Of a stretch of DNA of 64,000 bases, positions 49,516-64,000 are shown piece after piece (the stretch's first letter is position 1; each line of letters starts with the position of its first letter). This DNA is from Oikopleura dioica (Eukaryota; Animalia; Chordata): NCBI GenBank assembly GCA_907165135.1, contig OU015568.1, positions 7,068,001-7,132,000 on the forward strand, written 5' to 3'. Made by a program: the position numbers and the translations under genes. The notes under the pieces are model-generated. The model made no database searches. It saw only the letters and a list, made by a program, of their open reading frames with translations, and was not told the DNA's origin.

Positions 49516-52426
49516 AATTCCATTGGGCTGCTTCAGCTGACCCTAAGCAATCCTACGTTTACCTAGTAGAATAATTTTCATAAACTATCCTTTTCATATC
49601 ACCAAAAGAATGTTCACCTGTTACTTTGCCTGTAAATTCGTGCGCTGATTGTACATTTGCAACAAACTGAGTTCTCTCCTGCATATTATAAAATCAACAA
49701 ATCAATAATTTACTATCTATGTCTGTATGTACAAAGAGAGAGCAGGAGCTTGATAGAATCTATCTCGCAGATTTAGGGTTGGCCAAAAAAAAGGGATGGT
49801 CCTTTGATTTCCTTAAAACTTTCCTTGATTGTAAATTTGGGTCTATAAAATAATATTTTTCAAAAAATTTGGAAAAAAAATTTTTGGGTACCCATTTTTG
49901 GAGGCTTGAAAGTAGCCGAAAAGTGGTTTTTTCTCGATAACTTTTTTCTAGTACCATTTTTCAGAAGTTTTTCTTTTAGATTTAGATAGAGCTCATCAAG
50001 GCGGTCTTTTTGAGCCGTCGGATGAGTCTCTAGCGGTATCGGAAGACACTTTTTTTTTCGTGGAAGGTGTGAGGAAGATTATCTGCGGCAGATTATGGCA
50101 AAACAAATCCATGACGACAAAAGAAAGCAAAGGCAAAGGCAGAAATGGGGATAAGCTGAAATGCATAAATGTATTGATTTGCCTTTATAGAATTAAATAT
50201 TAATCCATCAGGACCTCGTTCGTACAAATGGAGCATTTCTTCTTGCGAGGCTTTTATTGTTCACGGAAAAAAAACGAAAAACGAGAATTCAACACATTTC
50301 TCGCTCATAGCAAATTGAAGACAACAAAGAAAATTGAGAAAGAGAGCGGCAAGTAGAGGAGCAAGAGTTAACAAAACAAGAGTTAGAAGTAAGTGTTTGA
50401 AGATGAAAAGAATTGTTTTTGCATCAGTCAGTTCAAATCTAAGAAATATTTTCAGAGAATCAGAGAATGATTATTTTCTAATTGCGTTTATTTGATCGAA
50501 TCCAATTCATAAAAATCCTAATCATTCACGGGCCATAAATCCAAGCTCTTATCCGTCTTTGATTGTGTGTATTTTTGTATTTCCCTACGAGAATTACAGT
50601 CATTCTACAGAATCAAGTGCTTATTTTTATCCATTTTTTTTATTCATCAGTTCAAATAACACATTTTTAGGAGCCAGCAATTTACGCATCTGCATAAATT
50701 CTACTCCGATTCGAGTAGTAGCATGCGTTAATCACGCTTGCTCACAATTCATGCGCCAAATTCGCCGCCCGCGGTAGTGGCACCAGGCAGCACCACCAAC
50801 GCGCGCGACCGTTTTTTCGAAAATCGTTTCTAGCGGCGCTCGACCAGCCGGTTTTTTTGTTATGAAACAACACACAAAGAGAGAGTATCTTGAAAACTCC
50901 TTCTGAAGAGAATAAAATAAGAGATCTTTTGATGAAAATTTACAGAAGAAAATCTTTTTGATGATAAAATAGAATATTAAATACCCCTAATAATATACAG
51001 TAGTACAGTCAGGTCGATAACAGTATCATTTATAATAAATAAAATTATCAATGTTTTATCCCCTTAATTTTCCTCGGAACAAATAAAAAAGGACCTTTTA
51101 ACATGAAAATAATCCTGTAAATCGACTGTAACCCGCTCTCATAAACACTAAGCAAGAACAGTAACCCCCTGCCCCAAATAACTTACCAGCGTTCGCCCCC
51201 TTTCCATCTGCCATTTGATCTGCGCAAATCTTCAAATTCCTGGCTAATATTATTCTGACCCGGAGCCTTATCTTTACTACGTCTGCCGTTCAATGCAGAC
51301 GAGTGCAAATTCTCCACTCATTACTACTACGCCCTCCCTCCCAATTCTCGTCTCAGAATCAAAACCTAAATTAGAGATCTATTTTAGCTGAGCATTACTG
51401 ATAGACACAGAGCAATTCTGAAAAAACCAGGGTGGCAGGACAGGCCCCCCAGTAATCTGATTGTAGTAAAATGAATGAATCAGAGAGAATCAGCGATTTG
51501 GCTTTAGATATCCGAATATTTCAATTTCAAGAGGAAAAAAGTGCTTTTCATTTTGAAAACTATCGATGGCGGGTGTATTTTTAGCTGGCAGCGGCTCGTG
51601 AAATTTTTTTTCAAACACCATTGATCTTGTCAGCGGGAGACAGTAAGCAGAAAATCGCCCAGCCCAGCCCCGCCAAAACGAACCTGAAAATCGAAAACGG
51701 AAATTCAAATTCTAACATTGAAATGAAAAAAGAGAGAGAAAAACGGCTTTGAGAGAATTGAAAAGGAGAAGAAACCGAAAATTTTTTCATCAAATTTATT
51801 TTTTTTTTTGTTATTTTTTATAATTTTCAAAAGAAATTTCTTCACTAGAATTTTCCTTTTAATTTTTTTATTTTACCTAAAATTGAATATTTAACGGTTT
51901 TTGAAGGGAGATAACTTTGTTAACTTCATTTTTAAAAAAATTCAAGAGCTCGTGAAGGGATGAAGTGTTCATTCCTGGCCTCTGTCCAAAAATATTTTCG
52001 GACTTTTTTCGACTCTGCTGACCGATAAATTGCGCCGTGAATGCATTCAGGTCGTGATGGGCGATTAAAGAAAAGGTCATTTTCTCAATCACGGCGGAGC
52101 GAATAAGTTCAGATTTAATGGACTCTGTCTGATTTTTATTTTGACAAATTGGGTTTACTCTATTTTAACAGAAATATATTAAAATACGCGGTCCGCATTT
52201 TAACGGGCAAATACCTCTGAGACGCTGCCATTTTAACGGATTTCGTATTCCTCAAAAGGATCCTAGTTTAACGGATTTTCTAGCCAAAAGCTTGGGAAGC
52301 CGTTATAATGGGAACATTTTCGAGGAATATTCAATCCGTTAAAATGGCGACCTCCCATTAAAATGATCACCCCTCTATTTTAAATTTACGAATCAAATAG
52401 AAAATTACTAGTATTAATAGTGATTA

Positions 52427-52602
52427 AATCACTATTGCCTATTTTCGCCTGAATTCCGATCCGAATGCAAAAATTCGAATGAATATACTTCCCAGTAGTT
52501 AATTTTGAGCCTGATTCTGAATCAAAATTAAAGACTGGGAAATAAATTCATTCGAATTTTTGTATTCGGATCGGAATTCAGGCGAAAAAGGCAATAGTGA
52601 TT
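52427..52602. mobile_element. 176-bp near-perfect palindromic MITE
   Basis: AATCACTATTGCCT...CGCCTGAATTCCGATCCGAAT mirrors ATTCGGATCGGAATTCAGGCG...GGCAATAGTGATT. Confidence 0.85.
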
Positions 52603-53678
52603 CATCAAATTCAATCCGCCTCAAAATTTATTAAAATCAAACAAAACTGCTATTGAAAAATCACCCTCAAAAATGGAATTTCATTCGTCAATGTCATTCA
52701 TTGTGGAATTCGGAATTTGGCTTCGATAAAAAAAAGGGTTGAAAAATTGAACGATAAATTGAATTAAGAGAATCGGGCGGGCGTCTTTTCAATCCAAAAA
52801 GAGCAACCCTGCTGGAGGTATTTTTTCCGGCCTCGAGTCGACAATGTTTTCCAAACGCGGGCGGCTCCTTTTAGCTTCTTTTTTCATTATTTTTTCGATT
52901 CTTGGAGACAGAGAATACCCCTATCAGTTTATCAGTTATCGCAGAACGAAAGAGAGAGAAAGAGACAGGAGCAGACGATGAGCCGTACTTATCAGGAGAC
53001 GCCACCAACCGATCGCTAAAGCAAAACGATCGACATACCAGTCGTGTCGCTCCCACGCATATTTTTCTTAATCAGCATCACAAGGCACACTAATTGAAAA
53101 TTGCAATTTGCAAAAGAAAATAACTGAACTGTGGAAATAATTTTACGAAATTCAAATTATTCATTTCCAATTTCTCCCAATTCTTCTATCCTTTTCAGAA
53201 TTTTTCGGCAGCTTTTTTATTAAAATTCTAAAAGAATCAATCAAAAAGCCGCCTTTTTGAATGTTCCGCCGAGCGCATAAATTTGAAATTACCGCCTAAT
53301 CCGTCAACTCATGAGTCATCCCTTTTTCGCCCGTAACAGAATAATTCCTGATGAAAATTATTGATTTTCTTTTTTGACTGATTGACCCGATTCATTTTTC
53401 GACTCATTTTTTCAGTTCAATGATAAAATAATTTAACTAATTTTCTCATTCGAAAGAAGGAAGTCTGTTACTCACAGGCTTCTGATAGTAAAACATTGAT
53501 TTGATAAGAAACTTACTCCCACCCTTATTCTTTCTCCTTGCTTATTCTTGCTGTTATCACTCACTCAAGAAGAGACTCGTTTTTAAATAGTCTCAAGCAC
53601 CTTGCGCTCCTCTTCTCGACTAACCGATTTCTTTATTTTTAGACTTGCCAAGGCGAAACCAACAACCCTAGTGCGAAT

Positions 53679-56600
53679 ATGGGAAACGCCGTTTCGACAA
53701 CCAAGGTACGACTGGGAAGAACTTATTAACCCGCCATAATAGGGGCTAAGCTAGAGGGATCAAATCAGGGCTTTATCCGGGTCACCGAATTTTCTCGGTA
53801 AAGGCCGCCTTTTGTGATATTTATCCAGCTAATCAAGCAGAAAAAATAGGTTTACTGAAGTTTTACTCGTTTTAAATTAACTTGTTTGCGTGGAAAAGCC
53901 ATTTCGAGACCCGTTTTGGATAAAAAGAAGTCCTTGTTGATTTCAAGTAGGCCCGAAATTGAACATATGGCGATAAAAAATACTATCAATGGCGGCTAAT
54001 TTCGGAAGTGTGGCAATTTTCATCTAGCAAAATTAAAATTAAAATCGCGCCGCTGGCCATCTGGATTTTGGCCTCAGGCGTGATTATTGTCCTCGGAGGC
54101 CGTCTACGTAGCGTGTGATTACTGAAACTGTGCTACTGCTACTGAACTTGTGCTAAATGAACTTTAGGGGTACACCCCTGGGGACGCGCAGCTCGGCGAG
54201 CCTGGTCTCCAAGGAAAAATTAAAAAACTGGTAAGTTGTCTAATCAAAAAAAGGAAGAAGGAAAAAAGCTAATCAAGGGGAACGCAGGTATAATAATAAT
54301 CCGTCGAAGGGATGAAAGCTTCAGATGAGCTGCTATTTTTTCTAAGGCGATTATCTCGACTCGTCCTGTTTTGGGAATAGCCACCTTTGTAATGATAAGT
54401 TTTGATAAGAAGCAGCTCAAAATTTTCAGTCTTCAATTCTGAATTTTTGAACTAGCTACATTTATTCGCAAAATCTGGGCTCCGCAACCTGTGAAGAGAG
54501 CCTGACTCAGGGTCTGAAAGATTTCTAATGAAAAGCCGCAAAGCGGCTATATTTTAAAAAGAAGCCGCAAAGTGGCTTCGCCAGAATTTAGAAATATATG
54601 CGGCTTTTCATTACAGATCTCTCAGACCCTGAGTCAGGTCTTCTACACAGGTTGCCGAGCTCAGATTGACCTTAGCGCGCAGAAGGGTTAATTTAACGCC
54701 CTTTTTGTTTTGAATACATTTGGGTGTTTATTTTCAGTTCTGGATCAATTCAAAAACTCATTCAAGCTCGGTTAGGTTTCCACTTTTTTCTTACTTTCTT
54801 TCTTTTTCACTCTTTTTGGCACAATAATGAGTTCCGCCTTATAAATTTCAATAGTGTTGGCTAGTGATATTTGTTTTTCTTAGGCACGAGTCTGTATGAG
54901 AATACAGGGGAGCTCTGAGTATTCAAGTACTCGGGTAGTAATCTATCCCCATTCTTGGGCTATTTGTTCTGCTATCTTCTACTATTCAACAACTACTACG
55001 ACGAGTAGTAGGTCGAGTTATTTTTATTTTCGAGGAGAGAGACAAATTCCTCCGCGCCAACGTCATCCGCGGCAGTGTGATCCCTCGCCGTGGTTCAGTA
55101 TCGATAAGCGATAAATTCGAGCTTCTGATCTTTTTCTTTTGCTTCCTCAGATCACAAACCACAGAGACACACACCAGAGCCCACTAAGCACGGAATAAAA
55201 GATTTATAATGAAGCTTTGTCGCAAAACTGTAAGTCCAGCTTATTTTCTTTGAACCTTATTCTGAATTGAACTGTCAAAAGAACTGGCTCTTCCCTTGAA
55301 AATTTACGGGTCAAAATTTTAATTCCAAAAAGGACAATATTTTAGCGATTAATAATCAACCCTAATATTTGATTTTAAAAAATCGAGGAGCCGCCTGCGG
55401 CTTCGATCAGATGAAAAATTTTAGCCGCGCTTAGCGCGGCTTTTTCGTCTTTTGCCTCGAAGCCGCAAGAGGCTTCTCGATTTTAATTCAAATATTATGG
55501 CGGATTTCTAATTGCAAAAAATTGTCCTTTTTTGGATTAAAATTTTGACCCCTAAGATTTCATGGAATTAGTTTCCCACTAATTTCTGGGAGAGGCGAGT
55601 AATCTAAGCCTATTTTTGGAATGGGTGTCATAAAAAGAGATCTTCGCAGGGGATTTTTTTCGCTTGGAGGACCCCTGAGAAGAAAATTTAATCTCGGGGA
55701 CTAATTTGCTGAATGCGGATCACAGCGGGGTTTTGCCAATCACCTACCACTCCTTTATTCTTTATTCAAGATTAAAATTTGAAAAGGACTTAGCGATGAA
55801 ATTTCAGTTGTAAAAAATACTCAGGCTTTTATCGCTTTAGTTCGTTTGAATGAAGTCAGTTGAAATTGACGTCTTTTTCGACGGGTTATTGAACGTTTAT
55901 TGAAACTGAATACGTCAATAGGCAACGAACTTCATTACTGACGGCTAATTACTGTATTCCAAATTGAACTTCTATTCTCAACTAGGAATTGAAAATGCTC
56001 TTTTGCTAAAAATGAATTCAAGATTGAGAATAGAAGTTCAGCCTTGAATACAGTAATTACAATGTATGTAGTAATTACTAATTAGCCGTCAATAATGAGG
56101 ATTGACGTATTCATTTTCCATAACCCGTTGAAAATCGTCAATTTCAAATTGACTGACCTTCTTTTTCTTTGATGATTTTCAAAAGAAAATTCTTGCTGAC
56201 TCAGTGAAATTAGCATAAATTTCGCATCATCAGCAAGGCGCCAAATTCAAAGCAAAAATCTTGGCGCGCATCAAAAATATTGAAATTTTCGCTGTATCGT
56301 TATTTTTTCGCTCGCTCTCGCGCCACCCAAGATTTTTTCGCGATCGGGCGCCCCCGCGATTTAATTTTTTGCAGCGAAAAATCCCGTTGTTCCTCGCAGG
56401 ACGCAACCTGTCGGACAAAACGCGCATTTTTCATTATTTTCATTTTCGAACTAAAGAAGTAAATAAGTCCTTTTCAAAGAGAGGTTGATTGAATCATAAA
56501 TAGAGAGAAATACTATTACAGTAAACAGCGGATTTAAAATTTTACACAAATATGGTTTCTGAATCTGTTCCCGCTGTGACCCCATTGGTAAGTTTTTCAA

Positions 56601-59600
56601 ATTTAGCTTTTTAATTCATGGATTTCAAAACATTTAATCAAGGTTTTCTTCATAATTGACGATTTGATGAGCATAATTTTGATTTTACATGCGTTAGGGT
56701 TTGTCAATCAGTAATTCTCGTAATCGCTAGCCAGTAACTCGTCTCCCCAGGGAATAGTTCTCAGCCGTTGGAAGCTCGCATTTAAATTTTTGATGCGATT
56801 TCCGTGATAAGCAGCGCGCCGCATCGAGCGATAGTTGGCGCGCGCCCAAGCCACCACCAGGTCACCTGATCGCTGGCTTCTCAGATTTTGACGGTCGTCG
56901 GCGCCGGCCACGTCATCGGCGAGTTGCCCCGCGGCGCGTTCCGAAGAATTGTCCTCGTGGGGGCGGGCCAGCGCGCTCGCTCTCCTGCGATTCATCCCTT
57001 TGGCGGCGGCGCGCGTTCTGCCCTCCGGCGCGTGATCTTCCCCGACCGTACTACAAGCCCTACACATTCATACTCATACAGATTTGCACCGAATAACATT
57101 TTCAATTACAGGAAGAATCAGAAGTCGTCAACGCAACTAAGGCTGACATGGCTGCCGAAGCAGACAAAGAGAATGCACCAAACGGGACCACTCCCAAGGC
57201 GGCCGAGGCCCCGACCAAGCCGCTCGAGCCTGCTACTTCAGAGGAGAACGGAAAAGAGAACCAGGTAAGCTTGATCACTTCAAAAGAGAAAGAGCGGGGG
57301 AGGGGTTGATTGATCCCTGTCCAGCTTCGTACTTTTTCGGGCGATCCAGATTAATAAATTAATGTCAAAGAGGTCAATCAGTATCTTCCCGAAGATCCGC
57401 GATTGTCAAAGTTGAGAATCGATGGGTTTTAAAAGAAATTAGAAACATTTGAAAAGCTAAAAGAAAAATTCTTCGTTGAAATCAAGGAAGACTAATTTTC
57501 AATTTTCCAAATTTGATTTTTTTGTTACTGAATTATATCAACTGCGAATACTGAATATTTTAAATTGTGTACGTGCTGTCAACAATGGCGGCGTTTTTTC
57601 TATGTTAGACATCGGTTGACGGCTAATTATTCAAAAAATCAATGCTTGCGCCCTTTTGTTGCGGCCGTGCCGCCATATGCTGCTGCTTTTTTACAGTTGA
57701 CTTATGGGAAGAAGGCTGTCTTTCTTTTCAAATTTGTAACATTCAAAATCAGGAACCGACTACGAGCGACAGCGTAGAAACCGACGAGAACAAGTCTCCG
57801 TCGAAGAAGGGCAAGGGCAAGAAGAAAAACTTCAAACAGCTGATGCCCAGCTTCTCTTTCAACAAGCAAAAGAAGACTGAAAAGAAAACCAACGAGGCGA
57901 AGAAAACCGAGGAGGCTTCTTCCGAAAAAGCAGCGGAGAAGGAAGCAGAAGGCGAAAAGAAAACTGAAGACACTCCTAAAAACTCCGAGGAAGAAAAAGC
58001 GACCGAAGAGGCTGCGGAAAAGACTGAAGCTGACGAAGAAAAGACCAAAGCGGAAGTCGAAGCCGAGGCGAAAGAAAGCACCACCGAAGCTACTCCAGAA
58101 GCTGATGTTGCCGAAAAGAAAGACGATGCTCCAGCTACTAAGGAAGATGCTGAGGAGGTGAAGCCAGACGTTGCTGCTGCTACTGAAGAAACTGCTACCG
58201 AGGAGGAAGGCACCACTTCAGAAGCACCAGCGGTAATAAATTAAATAAATTATTGATTGATTAGCTGACCATAAATTAGGCGGACGAGCAAAAGGCCGAT
58301 AAAAAGAAGAAAAAGGAAAAGACTCCGGATGACGCGGGCAAGCGAAACACTTGGTTCGACAACATCAAAGGCTACTTCGTCAGCCCCGAAAAGAAGGATA
58401 CCAAAAAGGCCGCTTCCGAGGACGGCAAGAAGTCGGAAACCGAAGCGAAGGCTGAGGAAGATGCTTCGGCAGCTGCTGCTCCTGACGCGGAAAACACCGA
58501 TGCGCAGAAACCAGAAGCTGCTGAAGCTACTGAAGAAGCCACTACCGACTCCGCCGCTGCTAAAACGGAAGAAACTCCTGCTGCTGAGCCAGCCACAGTC
58601 GAGTCAACTGCTGATACGACCGAGGGCGAGGCAAAGGACAAGCCAACGGAAGAAAAGGTAACAGAAACAAACAAACTTATCCGATAAGACAGGCCTTTTT
58701 TGATTCTTGATAAGGTTCAGTTTCCACTCACGAGCATGTATCTCTACTCGTTGCTCGAGGTAACAAAGAAAAACAACGGAAATCAACTTTCCCTTGATCT
58801 GCTTTTTGAACTAGAAAAGCTGATTTGAATATTTGAAATCTTGATTCAATTAGTCAATGTATTATTTAAATGACGATGTTTCATCTTGTTCAGTTTTCGA
58901 GATTGTTAACCTTTCTTTTTTAGGAAAAGGAACAGACCAAGAAAGCAAAGGAGGGCAAAAAAGAAGGTTCACTTTCGAAGCTCGTCAGCGGCCTGAAACG
59001 ACGCAAGAGCGGCAAGAAGGGTGCTGCAGAAAAGAAAGCCGGCGCTCAGTCTGAAGATGAAAAGGTAAGAAAAAGTGAAGATATTTTTTCGAACTCCCAA
59101 AAGGTCAATATATCATCCCTAATCCGCGCGAATCTGTCACGGGCGAGCGCGCCGCTGTGTATTCGGACTATCCTTTTTTCCTTGAGTGGCGTAACTCACT
59201 GTGAAATGTGATTAGAGCCCTGCCAGCAGGATGCGTTTGAACTGAATTCAAAATTTAGGAGGAGGCGACGACCACCGATTCACTTGACACCCCCGCTGAG
59301 GCAAAGACCGGAGACCAAACTGACGACGAGGCGATCGAACAACCCGCCCAAACCGCTGACGATGCCGTTGCCAGTGCAACCGATGCTAACGCTGCTGAGC
59401 CATCGGAGGAAGCGGAATCCACGGAAGGTGAATGACTACTCTTTCTATCTTGCTCTTCATCATTTTTTAGCAAAACCAGAGGGCAAAAAACGAGCTAATA
59501 CTTTGAAACGCATCTTTGGAAACATCACTGGTCCCTTCCAATCTAAGGACAAGAAAGAAAAGGTAAGAAAAACCCGCAATCAAAAAGAACATCTAAGAAA

Positions 59601-62600
59601 TCTGCATCATATTTGATCATCGCATCATCCTGCTTGTTTAGAAAGAACCAGCAAGTTCTGACGAAGCTGAAAAGACCGACGATGTGACGGAGAAATCCGA
59701 GGAAACGCCGGCGGCTGAGGTCGAAGAAAAGAAGTCTGAGACTGCCGAGCCCGTCGAGAAAGAAGAGGCCAAGGAGGAAGCGAAGGAAACTAGCGAAGAG
59801 AAGACCGACGCAGCCACCGACGAAACCAAAGCCGAGGATAAGCCAGCTAAGACCGTCAGTGAGCCAGGTAAAGATACACGCAAAAATGTTTGTTTCAAAG
59901 TTCAATAGTTGTAGAAAAGAGCGAGGAGAAAGTTGAGGAAGAGAAGGTCGAAGAAACTCAAGCTACTCCCGAGGAAACGACGCCGAGCGAGGTAATTATC
60001 ATTCACCTGGCAGTTATTCGCTATGTACAGTAATAACTGTCTATATATGCACATATTTAAAGAGACCAGGGCAAGTATGTTTGAGTCTGATTATTCCGCA
60101 ATCAGCAAATCTTCAAATCTTCATACTTGCCTCTTATTTGCGCATATATTCATATATTGATCTGACTGTACATTTTCAGGCGACGACTGTACAAGCAGTA
60201 GTGGAATCGGCGCCGGTCGCGGAGGAGTCAGGTAAACCGGCCTGAAAATTGCACGAATTTACCGTGTTGTCAATGAATGTATTCCAATCAAGCCCGTTTT
60301 TTTACCAAAAACTTTAAAGCCAAATACGCAAATCGTGTTCATAATCGAGCGTGATTTGGCATTCGCCTACTTTTTCGGACAAAGAACTGCACAACTTAAT
60401 CCTCCACCCACTTCCATCTATTGAATATCTTATGTCAGGCATAAAATACTATTTGATGGATTTTGCCAAGTTGAAATTGATGTTGATGTCGAGCTGTCGT
60501 TGGTTGAAGTTGCACCCCTCTTTCCAGGAAAGAAGTTTGTTTGGTTTGAATTTTTAACCGGTCAGTCCGCTCAGTCCACAATCAAAATCCACCTAACCCA
60601 CCTATCTCGCTACTGGACGGACTACTGATGTAACTCTATTTGTCTCTTTTCAATTGCGAGTTCAACCGCGCTCAACTTTGGACAATACTAGGAATCAGTG
60701 GTTCTTCCGTGCATACCTTCACCAAGATTTCCGTCGGCTCTCAAACCGACCTCGAAGCGTTGCTAGCCTACGTCAAGTCCCTCCAAGCTAAATTGGAAGA
60801 GTCCGTCGTCGAGGAGGAAGAAACTCCTCTTGCCCTCTCGGGGAGCATGAGAAGCGAGAGCCAAGAAACACAGACGTTTCAAGCCGAACAGGTGGCAGAA
60901 TCGTCACAAGTCACGGCGTCGCTGTCGGATCTCCTCGTTGACTCCGGTAATTCAACACCGACTAACAATCCTCGCCACTTCCAAGTTCGTGAAAGGGATC
61001 GAGATTTATAACTAAGACCCGTGTTTCTCATCTCGGATCAACTAATATCAGATCAACACTAGTACAACTAATACACTAGTTCACTACTCCACACAGGCAG
61101 CTTCCCAAAAAGAATCATTGATTATCGCATTATGCAAATTAAATGCACTCGTTTTGGGGCCTGTCCCTTCTGACTGTAAATATTCGATATATTTCGCCAT
61201 CTTTCGATCCCTGACTAAGCTCGCCGTCGGAGATGACTGTGCCCGAAAAGGTGCAGCTGTTCGAGTCCCTGTCCGTACCGGATCTGTCGAATGCGGCGTG
61301 TGGCTTCGATCAGGCGCCGCCCATGGCGATGCCCGTGTTGAGGTTTAACTCGAACGGGTCAATCTACAGCGCGGACGATCGCGATGAGGAGCGCGAAGAA
61401 AAGCTCTTTATCCCATCAACCCCTGCTCACGTAGCGGGTGCCTGTGACATCGAGGAGCTGATCGAACAAAGGAAAAGGGTCGAGGATCACCAGCCTCGCG
61501 CTACAGGAGGCCTACTTTCATTGCCCCCTGATTTTCAAGCCTGTACTGTAGAAATAGCCGAATTTCAAGGTCAAATTAACAATCCCAATCGGAATTGACC
61601 TTTCAAGTGTGTTTGACGGTTGAAACTCAAAGTTGGGTATTTTGATATTTGAATCAAGCACAAACGGAAGTTTGCTTGTTTGGGAACTGCTAAAATTGTG
61701 GGTTTCGAATTATTTATAGGATTACACTTTAATCCTGTTTGTGTTTGATGTGAAAATTTCAAGGGGCTCGCCATTTTTTTCATGGTAGATATTTCATACA
61801 CACTTCAAAAGGGCCAGTGCTCTTCAACTGTCAAAGACGAAGGGTTAATTTAGTTATCGCGGTTTCGATATTTTTCTTCAATAAAAATATTGGCTTTCGT
61901 ATTTTATATTTTGAATTTTGAATGGTTTTGAAAAGGGGATTGCTTGAAAATTACAGTAAAAAAGTGGGAAAGTAGCTCATTAGTGAGGTTGATAATCATG
62001 TCCATTTGATTCTGCGGCTAGCGCTGGCTGATCCTGGATTAAGCATTGAAAACGCGATCAGCGGGCTGTCATCTGAGGCTACTCAGTCGGCTCAGATTTG
62101 CTGCTCCGCTGACTCCTGCTCGACGGTGGAATCGATCTGCTCCAAAACTTCGACCACAGTTGACTGTAAATACCCCCAGACGCATCGTAAAGCCGCCTGG
62201 TAGCGTTAGTGCATTATTTACAAGCACTCCTGCTGTCGCGCCGATCGATTATTTTTCCTCCTTTTTTTCGTCGCTTATTATTACTTTTATAGCTGGGCGG
62301 CCGTTGAGACTCCACCCGCGTCCGAGTATATTGTATATTGACGGTAAAGACCGCCGGCGTATATTCTTTGGGCACGCTGCCAGTTTGTCTCTTTTTCACC
62401 ATTTTGGGCACGCGCGAAGGAACACGCATTCATTGACACACGCTTTTTCTTCTCTAAAAATGATACTTATAACTACCAGAGCTTTCTCACAGTAAAAATA
62501 CCGCACTGGAAAAACTTGCTTAGGCCATATTTTTCAACAACTAAAACTAAAACTAAAATTTCAAGGCGAAATTCCCGCTCAGGAAAAAGAAGAAAAGACA

Positions 62601-62763
62601 GAATCGACGGAGGAAGTCACGACTCCCGCCCCCGTTGCCGAATAAATGGTAAATCAACTTTCCTAGAACTGTAGCTGACTGTTCGCCTTCAGATTCGCCT
62701 TCCATGAATCCGAATCGTCGTCCAGGCAAGTTCAAACGATCTTCCCTCAAACTCGCCGCTTGA
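53679..62763 (+). CDS. Large acidic disordered MARCKS/AKAP12-like protein with alternative first exons (53679, 55209, 56552) and alternative last exons
   Basis: Shared E/A/K/T-rich exons at 57112-57264, 57753-58232, 58280-58657, 58924-59064, 59259-59428, 59471-59562, 59643-59866, 59915-59991 and 60180-60231, with canonical GT-AG junctions in frame; interspersed basic-aromatic motifs. The 3' exon chain is less certain. Confidence 0.7.
54475..54664. mobile_element. MITE family A copy, intronic; no TSD recognisable
   Basis: CTGGGCTCCGCAACCTGTG...CCTGACTCAGGGTCTGA and TCAGACCCTGAGTCAGG...ACACAGGTTGCCGAGCTCAG. Confidence 0.88.
55296..55562. mobile_element. MITE family B with different TIRs but family-A-type internal hairpins
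   Basis: TIR GGGTCAAAATTTTAATTCCAAAAAGGACAAT/ATTGTCCTTTTTTGGATTAAAATTTTGACCC; internal AGCCGC...GCGGCT stems. Confidence 0.8.
55856..56156. mobile_element. About 300-bp palindromic MITE
   Basis: GTCAGTTGAAATTGACG...CGGGTTATTG mirrors CATAACCCG...CGTCAATTTCAAATTGAC; internal arms TTGAACTTCTATTCTCAA/TTGAGAATAGAAGTTCA. Confidence 0.8.
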
Positions 62764-64000
62764 GTCTCGTAAAAAATCTCTTCCTTGTTTTCAAAAACGA
62801 GAACGACTATTACTATCTATCCTCCCCTGTATAAAAATCAACATTTCCCCGCTCCCTCCCCTTATTTTAAAAACCGCAAAAAACGCTCACACGCAAACCC
62901 GGATAAATTCCAATTTCCCAAAAGTACAAAATCCCAAAACGCGATAGATCTAACAGTGCAGCCTCTGTCAAAAGAGGAAAAGACCAGTTCTACACTGCCA
63001 GTTCTAGTTCTAGTTCGACTCCACAACCACAACTTTTCCTTCACAAAAGCAAAAGACCAACAATTATAATTAATTAACTTTTTATCTATTTTATTATTTT
63101 CTATCGTGCCATTTTTTAAGCTGTCAACTCATCCCATTCTAGACCAAAAAAACTCCTAAATCTGAACTTTCAAAACTCAAGCTATTCAAAATTCCAAAAA
63201 ATGAACATATTCCGCCCTTTTTTCTAAGTATAAATATTTGGCTAAACTACTGTACAACGGACTGTAGTCGACCTATCAATCTACTATTTTTCATTACACA
63301 GAAACTTTGTTGAGGGTATCTAACTTCTGACTGCATTCGACTAAACTCTAGTTTTCACTCGCCTGAGGGCAGAACGCGAGAATAGCCGCGGGCAGTCGAA
63401 ACTTTGAAAAGTTCCAATTTAGTAGCCCAAAATTTGAACAAATTTACAAAGTTTCGGGTACGCCAATTTTCAATTCTTTCGAATTCTAGAGTTTTAAAGA
63501 AAATACAGTTTCCAGCAGGCTTTTTCCCGGGTTAAAAAATACTTCTATAAATCTCAAAATCTTCAGTCCTAAAAATTTCCCGGGAAAAATCAGCTGTGTT
63601 TTCTTATCAAAACTCTTTGAAAGAAATTTTTATTGATAAAAAATTTTCATGCTTGTTTATTAATAATAAATAGCTTGTTTAAAGTTTAAAATTTAACTGT
63701 TTCTTCATCATCATCAAAAACCATCGCCAAACATTCTGTACATTCATTTTTTTTTCGCTGGCACAATTTTTAATTCAACAATTTTGTTTTTAACAACATC
63801 AAAAACGAAAGAAAGTGAAGAGAAATTTTTATTTTTGCTCGATCCTCAAAATCGTACTAATTTATACTTTTTGCGCGTTGCTAACATTCCCTACCCGTCT
63901 TTTTTATTTTTCTAGGCTTTTTGAATAACGAAAAAAGCGCCTGTCTTCATCAAGTTCGCCTCAAACAAACACGTGACAAATAGACCATGCGTTCCATTTT

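Follow-up and report, generated by a model that had tools for sequence, protein, structure and literature searches.

A probable two-start gene of Oikopleura dioica that places a myristoyl-motif or a plain N-terminus on one shared body

The window analyzed here is a stretch of 64,000 nucleotides of Oikopleura dioica DNA, and a gene of over 10 kb lies on its + strand, beginning near 53.6 kb and reaching past the window end. The original prediction described three short exons that begin with ATG (here e1a, e1b and e1c) and end at phase-0 GT donors fitting a shared acceptor at 57112, and all three mini-exons, with their donors and the acceptor, were found in the window sequence. The features of the locus, in window positions, are as follows.

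53679..53705, + strand: e1a, coding part of the first exon, encoding MGNAVSTTK and followed by donor GTACGA at 53706
54168..54230, + strand: 63-nt phase-0 exon encoding GYTPGDAQLGEPGLQGKIKKL, with an AG acceptor and a GTAAGT donor
55209..55229, + strand: e1b, an unsupported candidate first exon encoding MKLCRKT, followed by donor GTAAGT
56361..56587, + strand: e1c, alternative first exon with coding sequence 56552-56587 encoding MVSESVPAVTPL, donor GTAAGT
56748..56877, no strand: conserved non-coding block between e1c and exon 2 (alignment to the sister lineage, sliding identity)
57112..57264, + strand: shared exon 2, acidic, 51 codons in 153 nt, phase 0 to 0, acceptor cag followed by G
57753..58232, + strand: shared exon 3 (frame and splice sites)
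57804-57887, + strand: polybasic effector-like patch KKGKGKKKNFKQLMPSFSFNKQKKTEKK in exon 3 (charge scan, conservation)
58280-58657, 58924-59064 and 59259-59427, + strand: shared exons 4-6 (three-frame reading, collinear blastn with the mRNA contig L002)
59471-59562, 59642-59867, 59909-59991 and 60180-60231, + strand: shared exons 7-10 (same evidence as exons 4-6)
62566..62645, + strand: last coding exon, stop TAA at 62643-62645 (blastn of L002 against the window)
62649-62691, + strand: 43-nt intron in the 3'UTR (blastn of L002 against the window, sequence)

The 3'UTR continues to the window end. Two ORFs in the intron before the last coding exon (60692-61009 and 61233-61598) are candidate alternative exons. 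The coding sequences sum to 1944 nt for the form beginning with e1a and 1890 nt for the form beginning with e1c, each divisible by 3, and the predicted proteins are about 647 or 629 aa long. An Rfam search of 50000-64000 gave no match. The gene fits a two-promoter, multi-exon model; its Oikopleura product, predicted to be disordered, is lineage-restricted and looks unannotated.

Transcript structure was read from three poly(A) RNA runs (X5, X6 and X7) of a sister lineage that is 90-95% identical to the window, with splice joints counted at a threshold of 3 reads, and from the poly(A) mRNA contig L002, which is 3229 nt long and has a 599-aa ORF. Single window exons served as homology queries, together with the L002 product in place of joined window exons. 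A bacterial contig (P0007/L007, grouped with P0004) was irrelevant and was dropped, and the P0005 contigs were too short to help. The joint from exon 2 to exon 3 (57264>57753) was covered by 129, 393 and 329 reads in X5, X6 and X7, respectively; exon 2 also aligned to L002, and its differences between lineages fall mostly at third codon positions.

Junction reads into 57112 had been named as the check on the three first exons, and they came from e1a, mainly by way of the 63-nt exon, and from e1c, with none from e1b at the threshold of 3 reads. Reads joined e1a to the 63-nt exon (53705>54168; 66, 143 and 106 in X5, X6 and X7) and the 63-nt exon to exon 2 (54230>57112; 73, 215 and 143), while the direct joint that skips it (53705>57112) was found with 4 reads, in X7 only. 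The stretch 54168-54230, previously regarded as a possible cassette, is therefore a real exon by its joints in three runs but not a cassette; it is near-constitutive in e1a transcripts, present in nearly all of them and missing from e1c transcripts, which assigns it to the myristoyl form. The PROSITE PS00008-type consensus for N-myristoyltransferase substrates is G-{EDRKHPFYW}-x(2)-[STAGCN]-{P}, with Gly at position 2, an allowed residue at 3, a small one at 6 and no Pro at 7. As had been claimed, MGNAVSTTK fits this consensus (Gly2, Asn3, Ser6 and Thr7). The sister lineage encodes an identical peptide, its sole difference in e1a being synonymous (53693 T>G), and the three differences in the 63-nt exon are all at synonymous third positions.

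The contig L002 opens with about 190 nt of unspliced leader before the e1c ATG and joins e1c to exon 2, and therefore e1c has its own start site, separate from that of e1a and located inside a 2.9-kb intron. The L002 leader is collinear with L003, a genomic contig of the sister lineage; the e1c 5'UTR reaches back to about 56361 or further, and no other ATG occurs in the 380 nt before the e1c start codon. In X7, a diverged version of e1c immediately preceded 57112 in 59 loose-end reads, and their agreement was 1.0. The e1c start was clearly seen in this one of the three samples; none of the loose ends listed for X5 and X6 was e1c, and its use there is known only to lie below the listed ones. 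L003 retains the e1c ATG and a GTAAG donor, the differences from the sister lineage within e1c are four synonymous and one conservative (Val>Leu), and a more distant relative, P0006, keeps an e1c-type N-terminus starting MVNESVMSVKPL. Both N-termini are thus under coding constraint. The genome is very compact, yet the gene keeps the 2.9-kb intron, whose non-coding blocks are better conserved than the exons; the block at 56748..56877, which matches the sister lineage at 90% identity or more and so exceeds most coding sequence, is probably regulatory.

Downstream of either start, the shared body is very acidic (net charge about -69) and predicted to be disordered, and a charge scan found two patches of +9 per 25 aa. 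The segment KKGKGKKKNFKQLMPSFSFNKQKK at 57804-57887 is polybasic, with Ser flanked by Phe and +9 per 25 aa inside an acidic, Ala/Glu-rich protein. The exon 3 patch is conserved in L002, P0001, P0002 and P0006, and exons 4-10 carry further conserved basic/hydrophobic patches (NTWFDNIKGYFVSPEKK, SLSKLVSGLKRRKSGKK and NTLKRIFGNITGPFQSK), so that the shared body has four or more conserved basic patches; several are polybasic and contain Phe and Ser. Pfam searches at E up to 10 returned no family for the exons, the 599-aa L002 protein, P0001 or P0006, and phmmer against 1.84 billion representatives returned 5 matches, all Oikopleura-like fragments, with no MARCKS, AKAP12 or Akap200 among them. A PDB sequence search and the ESM Atlas gave no usable lead. 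A word search with exon 3 found three fragments only; neither the whole L002 protein nor its residues 13-108 had any match in such a search, a result that says little in view of low-complexity words and length limits.

One alternative is the three-state switch originally proposed: MKLCRKT would be a genuine third first exon, active in rare cell types or stages, and would give a palmitoylated, GAP-43-like N-terminus. Consistent with this, e1b ends in phase 0 at a GTAAGT donor that is perfect and belongs to a set of just three GTRAGT donors in 52700-57111 (54231, 55230 and 56588), the other two being real exon ends. Its leader is ATG-free for 313 nt, a length that a single other ATG-free gap in 50000-57111 exceeds, the bin 55061-55257 holds one or two sister-lineage reads aligned at 90% or more, and three- or four-way variation of N-terminal anchors is known in KChIPs (PMC3973911). 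The sequence is single copy in its own genome, and the sister-lineage genomic contigs L001 and L003 end about 500 nt or more short of it. The RNA points the other way: despite 70-215 junction reads into 57112, not one joint from 55229 reached the 3-read threshold in X5-X7, none of the listed loose ends lay at 55229, and the X7 loose ends at 57111 were uniformly e1c. With no such joint or listed loose end, we take the two first exons and the 63-nt exon as real and the third first exon as unsupported. The strong donor with an in-frame ATG is also close to chance expectation, since mononucleotide shuffles of 52700-57111 gave 2.2 GTRAGT donors and 0.46 with an in-frame ATG per shuffle, and an ATG followed by a phase-0 GT is common in this interval (23 of 166 GT sites). 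A degenerate codon pattern for e1b had 0 matches in metagenome contigs, a weak negative because one amino-acid change would defeat it, and one Cys among seven residues predicts palmitoylation only weakly. Because the e1b signal is near chance, with neither transcript support in the three runs nor evidence of conservation, a three-way switch is unsupported. Most likely, MKLCRKT is an ORF that abuts a strong donor by chance, and we regard a three-state switch as improbable.

Other explanations accept the exons and dispute what they encode or do. Upstream of the e1a ATG, an acceptor-like tag followed by ACTTGCC lies at 53643, and an upstream exon spliced into it could supply an earlier start codon, so that the Met-Gly of e1a would be internal and no isoform would be myristoylated. 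The 36 nt from 53643 to the ATG form an open frame, in which the sister lineage shows a 9-nt difference, a multiple of three. The median length of the loose ends before 53679 is 70-85 nt, which exceeds the 27-nt leader after 53643 plus a 40-nt spliced leader (SL). The loose end at 53643 reads CAG joined to ACTTG, and the SL sequence ends in AACAG (PMC6883708); SL trans-splicing at this position was rejected as the sole explanation of the loose ends because they are longer than SL plus leader. On the other side, an unspliced leader would hold an in-frame TAG at 53640-53642, SL trans-splicing adds no ATG and yields an in-frame TAA (SL sequence from PMC6883708), the leader is ATG-free for 259 nt, back to 53423, and the MGNAVS consensus is kept with a synonymous change only. 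An internal Met-Gly is considered very unlikely. It is somewhat less unlikely, if still doubtful, that both N-termini are real but their difference has little functional effect, the polybasic patches localizing the protein and the promoters varying only its expression. The conserved basic patches of the shared body would suit this explanation, as would the variation of e1c use among samples and the conserved non-coding blocks in the introns, which suggest elaborate transcriptional control. Coding constraint on both short peptides across lineages argues against it, and so do two precedents. In MARCKS, myristate and basic domain act together. The same is indicated for Drosophila Akap200, which combines myristoylation with a MARCKS-like domain and in which G2A abolished the overexpression phenotype (PMC5831198).

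We therefore favor, as the likely reading, a gene with two transcription starts that place a myristoyl-motif N-terminus or one without such a motif on one shared body. The proposed promoter choice is supported, by junctions and the full-length L002, for a start exon with the myristoyl motif versus one with none, and is unsupported for the palmitoyl third state, for which the RNA gave no support; with e1b set aside on that ground, what is left is a two-state switch of an ordinary, known type, analogous to AKAP12 alpha/beta. In this model, the upstream start would give the major form, in which e1a and the 63-nt exon encode MGNAVSTTK-GYTPGDAQLGEPGLQGKIKKL-, and the internal start would give the e1c form, opening with the e1c peptide, which has no lipidation motif. 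By analogy with the myristoyl-electrostatic switch of the MARCKS type, the e1a form may be held on membranes by a predicted myristate together with the basic patches. The e1c form would contact membranes by basic patches alone, and for this reason is expected to have higher solubility or to be more dynamic. What we infer from these sequences is myristoylation, a difference between the forms in membrane binding, and any regulation by phosphorylation or calmodulin.

Because Pfam, PDB and distant sequence searches yielded no relatives, the likeness of the protein to MARCKS, Akap200 and AKAP12 is one of layout only, and no family relationship was detected. AKAP12 (gravin/SSeCKS) is known to be myristoylated in its alpha isoform alone. 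Its alpha, beta and gamma isoforms each have their own promoter and are alike except at the N-terminus (PMC8851525, citing Streb et al. 2004). The original prediction compared the gene with these promoter isoforms, and as an analogy this is apt, but there is no detectable sequence similarity. The WSK-type calmodulin-binding motif of AKAP12 (Pfam PF03832) had no match in the exons, L002, P0001 or P0006. Motifs such as NTWFDNIKGYFVSPEKK resemble the WSK type only by eye. The pattern of the RII-binding amphipathic helix was unmatched in the L002 protein and window exons, and there was no RII_binding Pfam match; an alternative exon might still carry such a helix. Like AKAP12, the Oikopleura protein is a long acidic disordered scaffold with several polybasic patches, which in AKAP12 bind membranes, and with promoter-specific N-termini; unlike AKAP12, it is about 630-650 aa rather than roughly 1700, and two forms only are supported. 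It seems most unlikely that this is a fast-evolving larvacean counterpart of AKAP12/Akap200 whose homology was erased by disorder, with a myristoyl/plain promoter split that is ancient in chordates and MKLCRKT as a rare, cell-type-restricted palmitoyl form; if true, a three-way membrane-anchor code would lie in one compact-genome gene, flanked by conserved intronic regulatory blocks.

The MARCKS family profile (Pfam PF02063) gave no match. The layout shared with Akap200 and MARCKS is a myristoylation consensus followed, about 100 residues on, by a polybasic Phe/Ser patch in an acidic, Ala/Glu/Lys-rich disordered protein (PMC5831198), but both Akap200 forms are myristoylated and differ by an internal RII-binding exon, not at the N-terminus. 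MKLCRKT superficially recalls the palmitoylated N-terminus of GAP-43 and Drosophila igloo, a resemblance of one Cys, whereas e1b had no joint or listed loose end in X5-X7 and Pfam, the IQ motif included, gave no match. KChIPs, an unrelated EF-hand family whose N-terminal variants give cytoplasmic, N-myristoylated, S-palmitoylated or transmembrane forms (PMC3973911), are the precedent for the three-state idea, while here the myristoyl-type and plain forms alone are supported. Since AKAP12 and KChIPs are well-known examples of alternative promoters that turn an N-terminal lipid anchor on or off, the principle is not new; with the two short N-terminal peptides of the Oikopleura gene, the myristoyl-electrostatic model could be tested simply in a tunicate.

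The original prediction placed three alternative ATG first exons before a shared exon, e2, and its exon coordinates agree exactly with the window text on direct reading of the sequence:

Candidate first exons
53679, + strand: ATG of e1a, nine codons (MGNAVSTTK), then GTACGA
55209, + strand: ATG of e1b, seven codons (MKLCRKT), then GTAAGT
56552, + strand: ATG of e1c, twelve codons (MVSESVPAVTPL), then GTAAGT

The acceptor ...ttacag/G at 57112 opens a 153-nt phase-0 exon ending at 57264, and 54168-54230 forms 63 nt in phase 0, flanked by AG and GTAAGT. Within 52700-57111, an in-frame ATG with no intervening stop precedes 23 of the 166 GT dinucleotides, and only three GTRAGT donors occur (54231, 55230, 56588); shuffling this interval yields 2.2 such donors, 0.46 of them with an in-frame ATG. 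The ATG-to-donor pattern by itself is weak evidence for first exons.

Poly(A) RNA-seq reads from three runs, X5-X7, were aligned to 52500-58400 (5901 letters). They are only 90-95% identical to the window, and therefore come from a sister lineage.

Joints with GT..AG borders (reads in X5/X6/X7)
53705 to 54168: 66/143/106
54230 to 57112: 73/215/143
53705 to 57112: 0/0/4
57264 to 57753: 129/393/329

These counts show that the 63-nt exon is real and nearly always included after e1a. It had been proposed as a possible cassette, but rather than being a free one it belongs to the e1a form, and is skipped in four X7 reads. Differences between the lineages, one in e1a and three in the 63-nt exon, are all at synonymous third positions; in e2, 8 of 11 fall at third codon positions.

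In X7, 59 reads carried, directly before 57112, a sequence absent from the window as such (consensus agreement 1.0), which proved to be a version of e1c that differs from the window's by four synonymous substitutions and a single Val>Leu. This read-derived sequence matched two marine contigs of the sister lineage, L002 (mRNA) and L003 (genomic DNA). On the window, L002 (3229 nt, poly(A) at its end, 599-aa ORF) aligns collinearly from ~56361 until the window ends; its opening 190 nt match, in collinear order, the genomic sequence that precedes the e1c ATG, and it joins e1c directly to e2. L003 retains the ATG, the peptide and a GTAAG donor. The unspliced leader, the e1c-e2 joint and the genomic match establish e1c as a genuine first exon, whose own start site lies 190 nt or more before its ATG. 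In a more distant relative, the metatranscriptome fragment P0006 starts MVNESVMSVKPL and runs on into the conserved basic patch with 43% identity. Junctions into e2 are ~28% e1c in X7, and e1c is not among the loose ends listed for X5 and X6, where it may still be used at a low level; this difference between samples suggests that promoter use is regulated. The data demonstrate that there are two start exons, how they are spliced, and that both are under coding constraint.

The third predicted exon, e1b, found no support in these RNA reads, unlike e1a and e1c. It has a perfect donor (GTAAGT), a leader without ATG for 313 nt, and a single copy in its own genome. At 55229, neither a joint nor a loose end was among those listed for the X5-X7 poly(A) reads, and no more than one or two reads fell in the e1b bin. 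The sequence signal of e1b does not exceed the chance level of shuffles, and a codon-degenerate scan of metagenome contigs gave no match. The available sister-lineage genomic contigs end ~500 nt short of e1b and do not cover it. We consider it very improbable that e1b is a genuine first exon.

Loose ends before 53679 read ...CAG/ACTTGTC..., with medians of 70-85 nt (X5-X7). The Oikopleura spliced leader (SL) terminates in ...AACAG (PMC6883708), and the window carries tag/ACTTGCC at 53643; the SL (40 nt) and a 27-nt leader together fall short of these medians. The e1a leader, free of ATG over 259 nt, and an in-frame stop before Met-Gly whether the leader is unspliced or SL-spliced, favour the Met-Gly of e1a as the probable true start.

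Exons were modelled from frame and splice-site reading and L002 alignment; searches were run exon by exon, with L002 as the natural spliced form.

Gene model (+ strand)
53679-53705: e1a, coding part
54168-54230: 63-nt exon, only after e1a
56552-56587: e1c, coding part, alternative to e1a plus 63-nt exon
57112-57264: e2
57753-58232: e3
58280-58657: e4
58924-59064: e5
59259-59427: e6
59471-59562: e7
59642-59867: e8
59909-59991: e9
60180-60231: e10
62566-62645: last coding exon, stop TAA at 62643

The coding length is 1944 nt (647 aa) in the e1a form and 1890 nt (629 aa) in the e1c form. Just after the stop codon, a 43-nt GT..AG intron in the 3'UTR (62649-62691) is spliced out in L002. Two open frames of 100-120 codons, 60692-61009 and 61233-61598 (+), lie within the 2.3-kb last intron, are missing from L002, and are candidates for alternative exons or a nested gene. 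The former holds an amphipathic-looking stretch, TDLEALLAYVKSLQAKLEE.

Blocks with at least 90% identity to the sister lineage over at least 40 nt
Intronic: 56748-56877, 57007-57058, 57338-57382, 57460-57508, 57588-57680, 58704-58765, 59066-59128, 59180-59258, 60232-60309
Promoter, upstream of e1c: 56292-56344

These blocks exceed most of the gene's coding sequence in conservation, and look like regulatory non-coding elements since their indels are not multiples of three, which is unusual for so compact a genome. The long first intron also holds three palindromic, MITE-like inverted-repeat elements (54472-54667, 55294-55565, 55946-56059). The third is missing from L003, and contigs of another run, X1, match in this intron only the first and the adjoining 54625-54907. 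A CGTCATC core is common to 55060-55075 and 56905-56920 (ACGTCATCCGCGG and ACGTCATCGGCGAG in the window; CGTCATCGTCC in L003), one copy preceding the e1b ATG by ~140 nt and another near a conserved intron block, and may be a common transcription-factor site.

The protein is 21% Glu, 16% Lys, 13% Ala and 11% Thr, with a net charge of ~-69, and its conserved basic patches contain Phe and Ser (KKGKGKKKNFKQLMPSFSFNKQKK, NTWFDNIKGYFVSPEKK, SLSKLVSGLKRRKSGKK, NTLKRIFGNITGPFQSK). The sister lineage carries an in-frame 12-nt insertion in e2 (window 57207/57232), and its e3 has undergone heavy rearrangement. In this e2/e3 comparison the basic patches alone remain fixed, indicating that the acidic spacers evolve rapidly by indels. 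Among 1.84 billion representatives only five matched, all Oikopleura-like fragments. One 55-aa fragment, P0004, shares a 90% cluster with P0007 (479 aa, Por_Secre_tail Pfam match), encoded on a bacterial-looking Logan contig (L007, 7292 nt); this shared cluster looks like a clustering artefact.

MARCKS is held on the membrane by myristate and basic patches, and released by phosphorylation or calmodulin. The MGNAVS of e1a fits the N-myristoyltransferase consensus, and in this major form predicted myristate and basic patches would provide membrane retention, with release possibly triggered when the patches are phosphorylated or bound by calmodulin. The e1c form, without a lipid motif, would be expected to bind membranes more weakly. 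This proposal draws on established MARCKS knowledge and the Akap200 result (PMC5831198). Likeness to MARCKS, Akap200 and AKAP12 is in layout only, without distant sequence match: the protein matched no Pfam family, had no sequence relative in the PDB, gave no lead in the ESM Atlas, and did not match an AKAP RII-helix pattern.

A literature search found no paper linking Oikopleura with MARCKS. AKAP12 alpha, beta and gamma arise from separate promoters and differ solely in their N-termini (PMC8851525), and N-terminal exons make KChIP variants cytoplasmic, myristoylated, palmitoylated or transmembrane (PMC3973911). Because of these precedents, N-terminal anchor choice is already known in principle, and the two-start Oikopleura gene is a new, lineage-restricted example of it.
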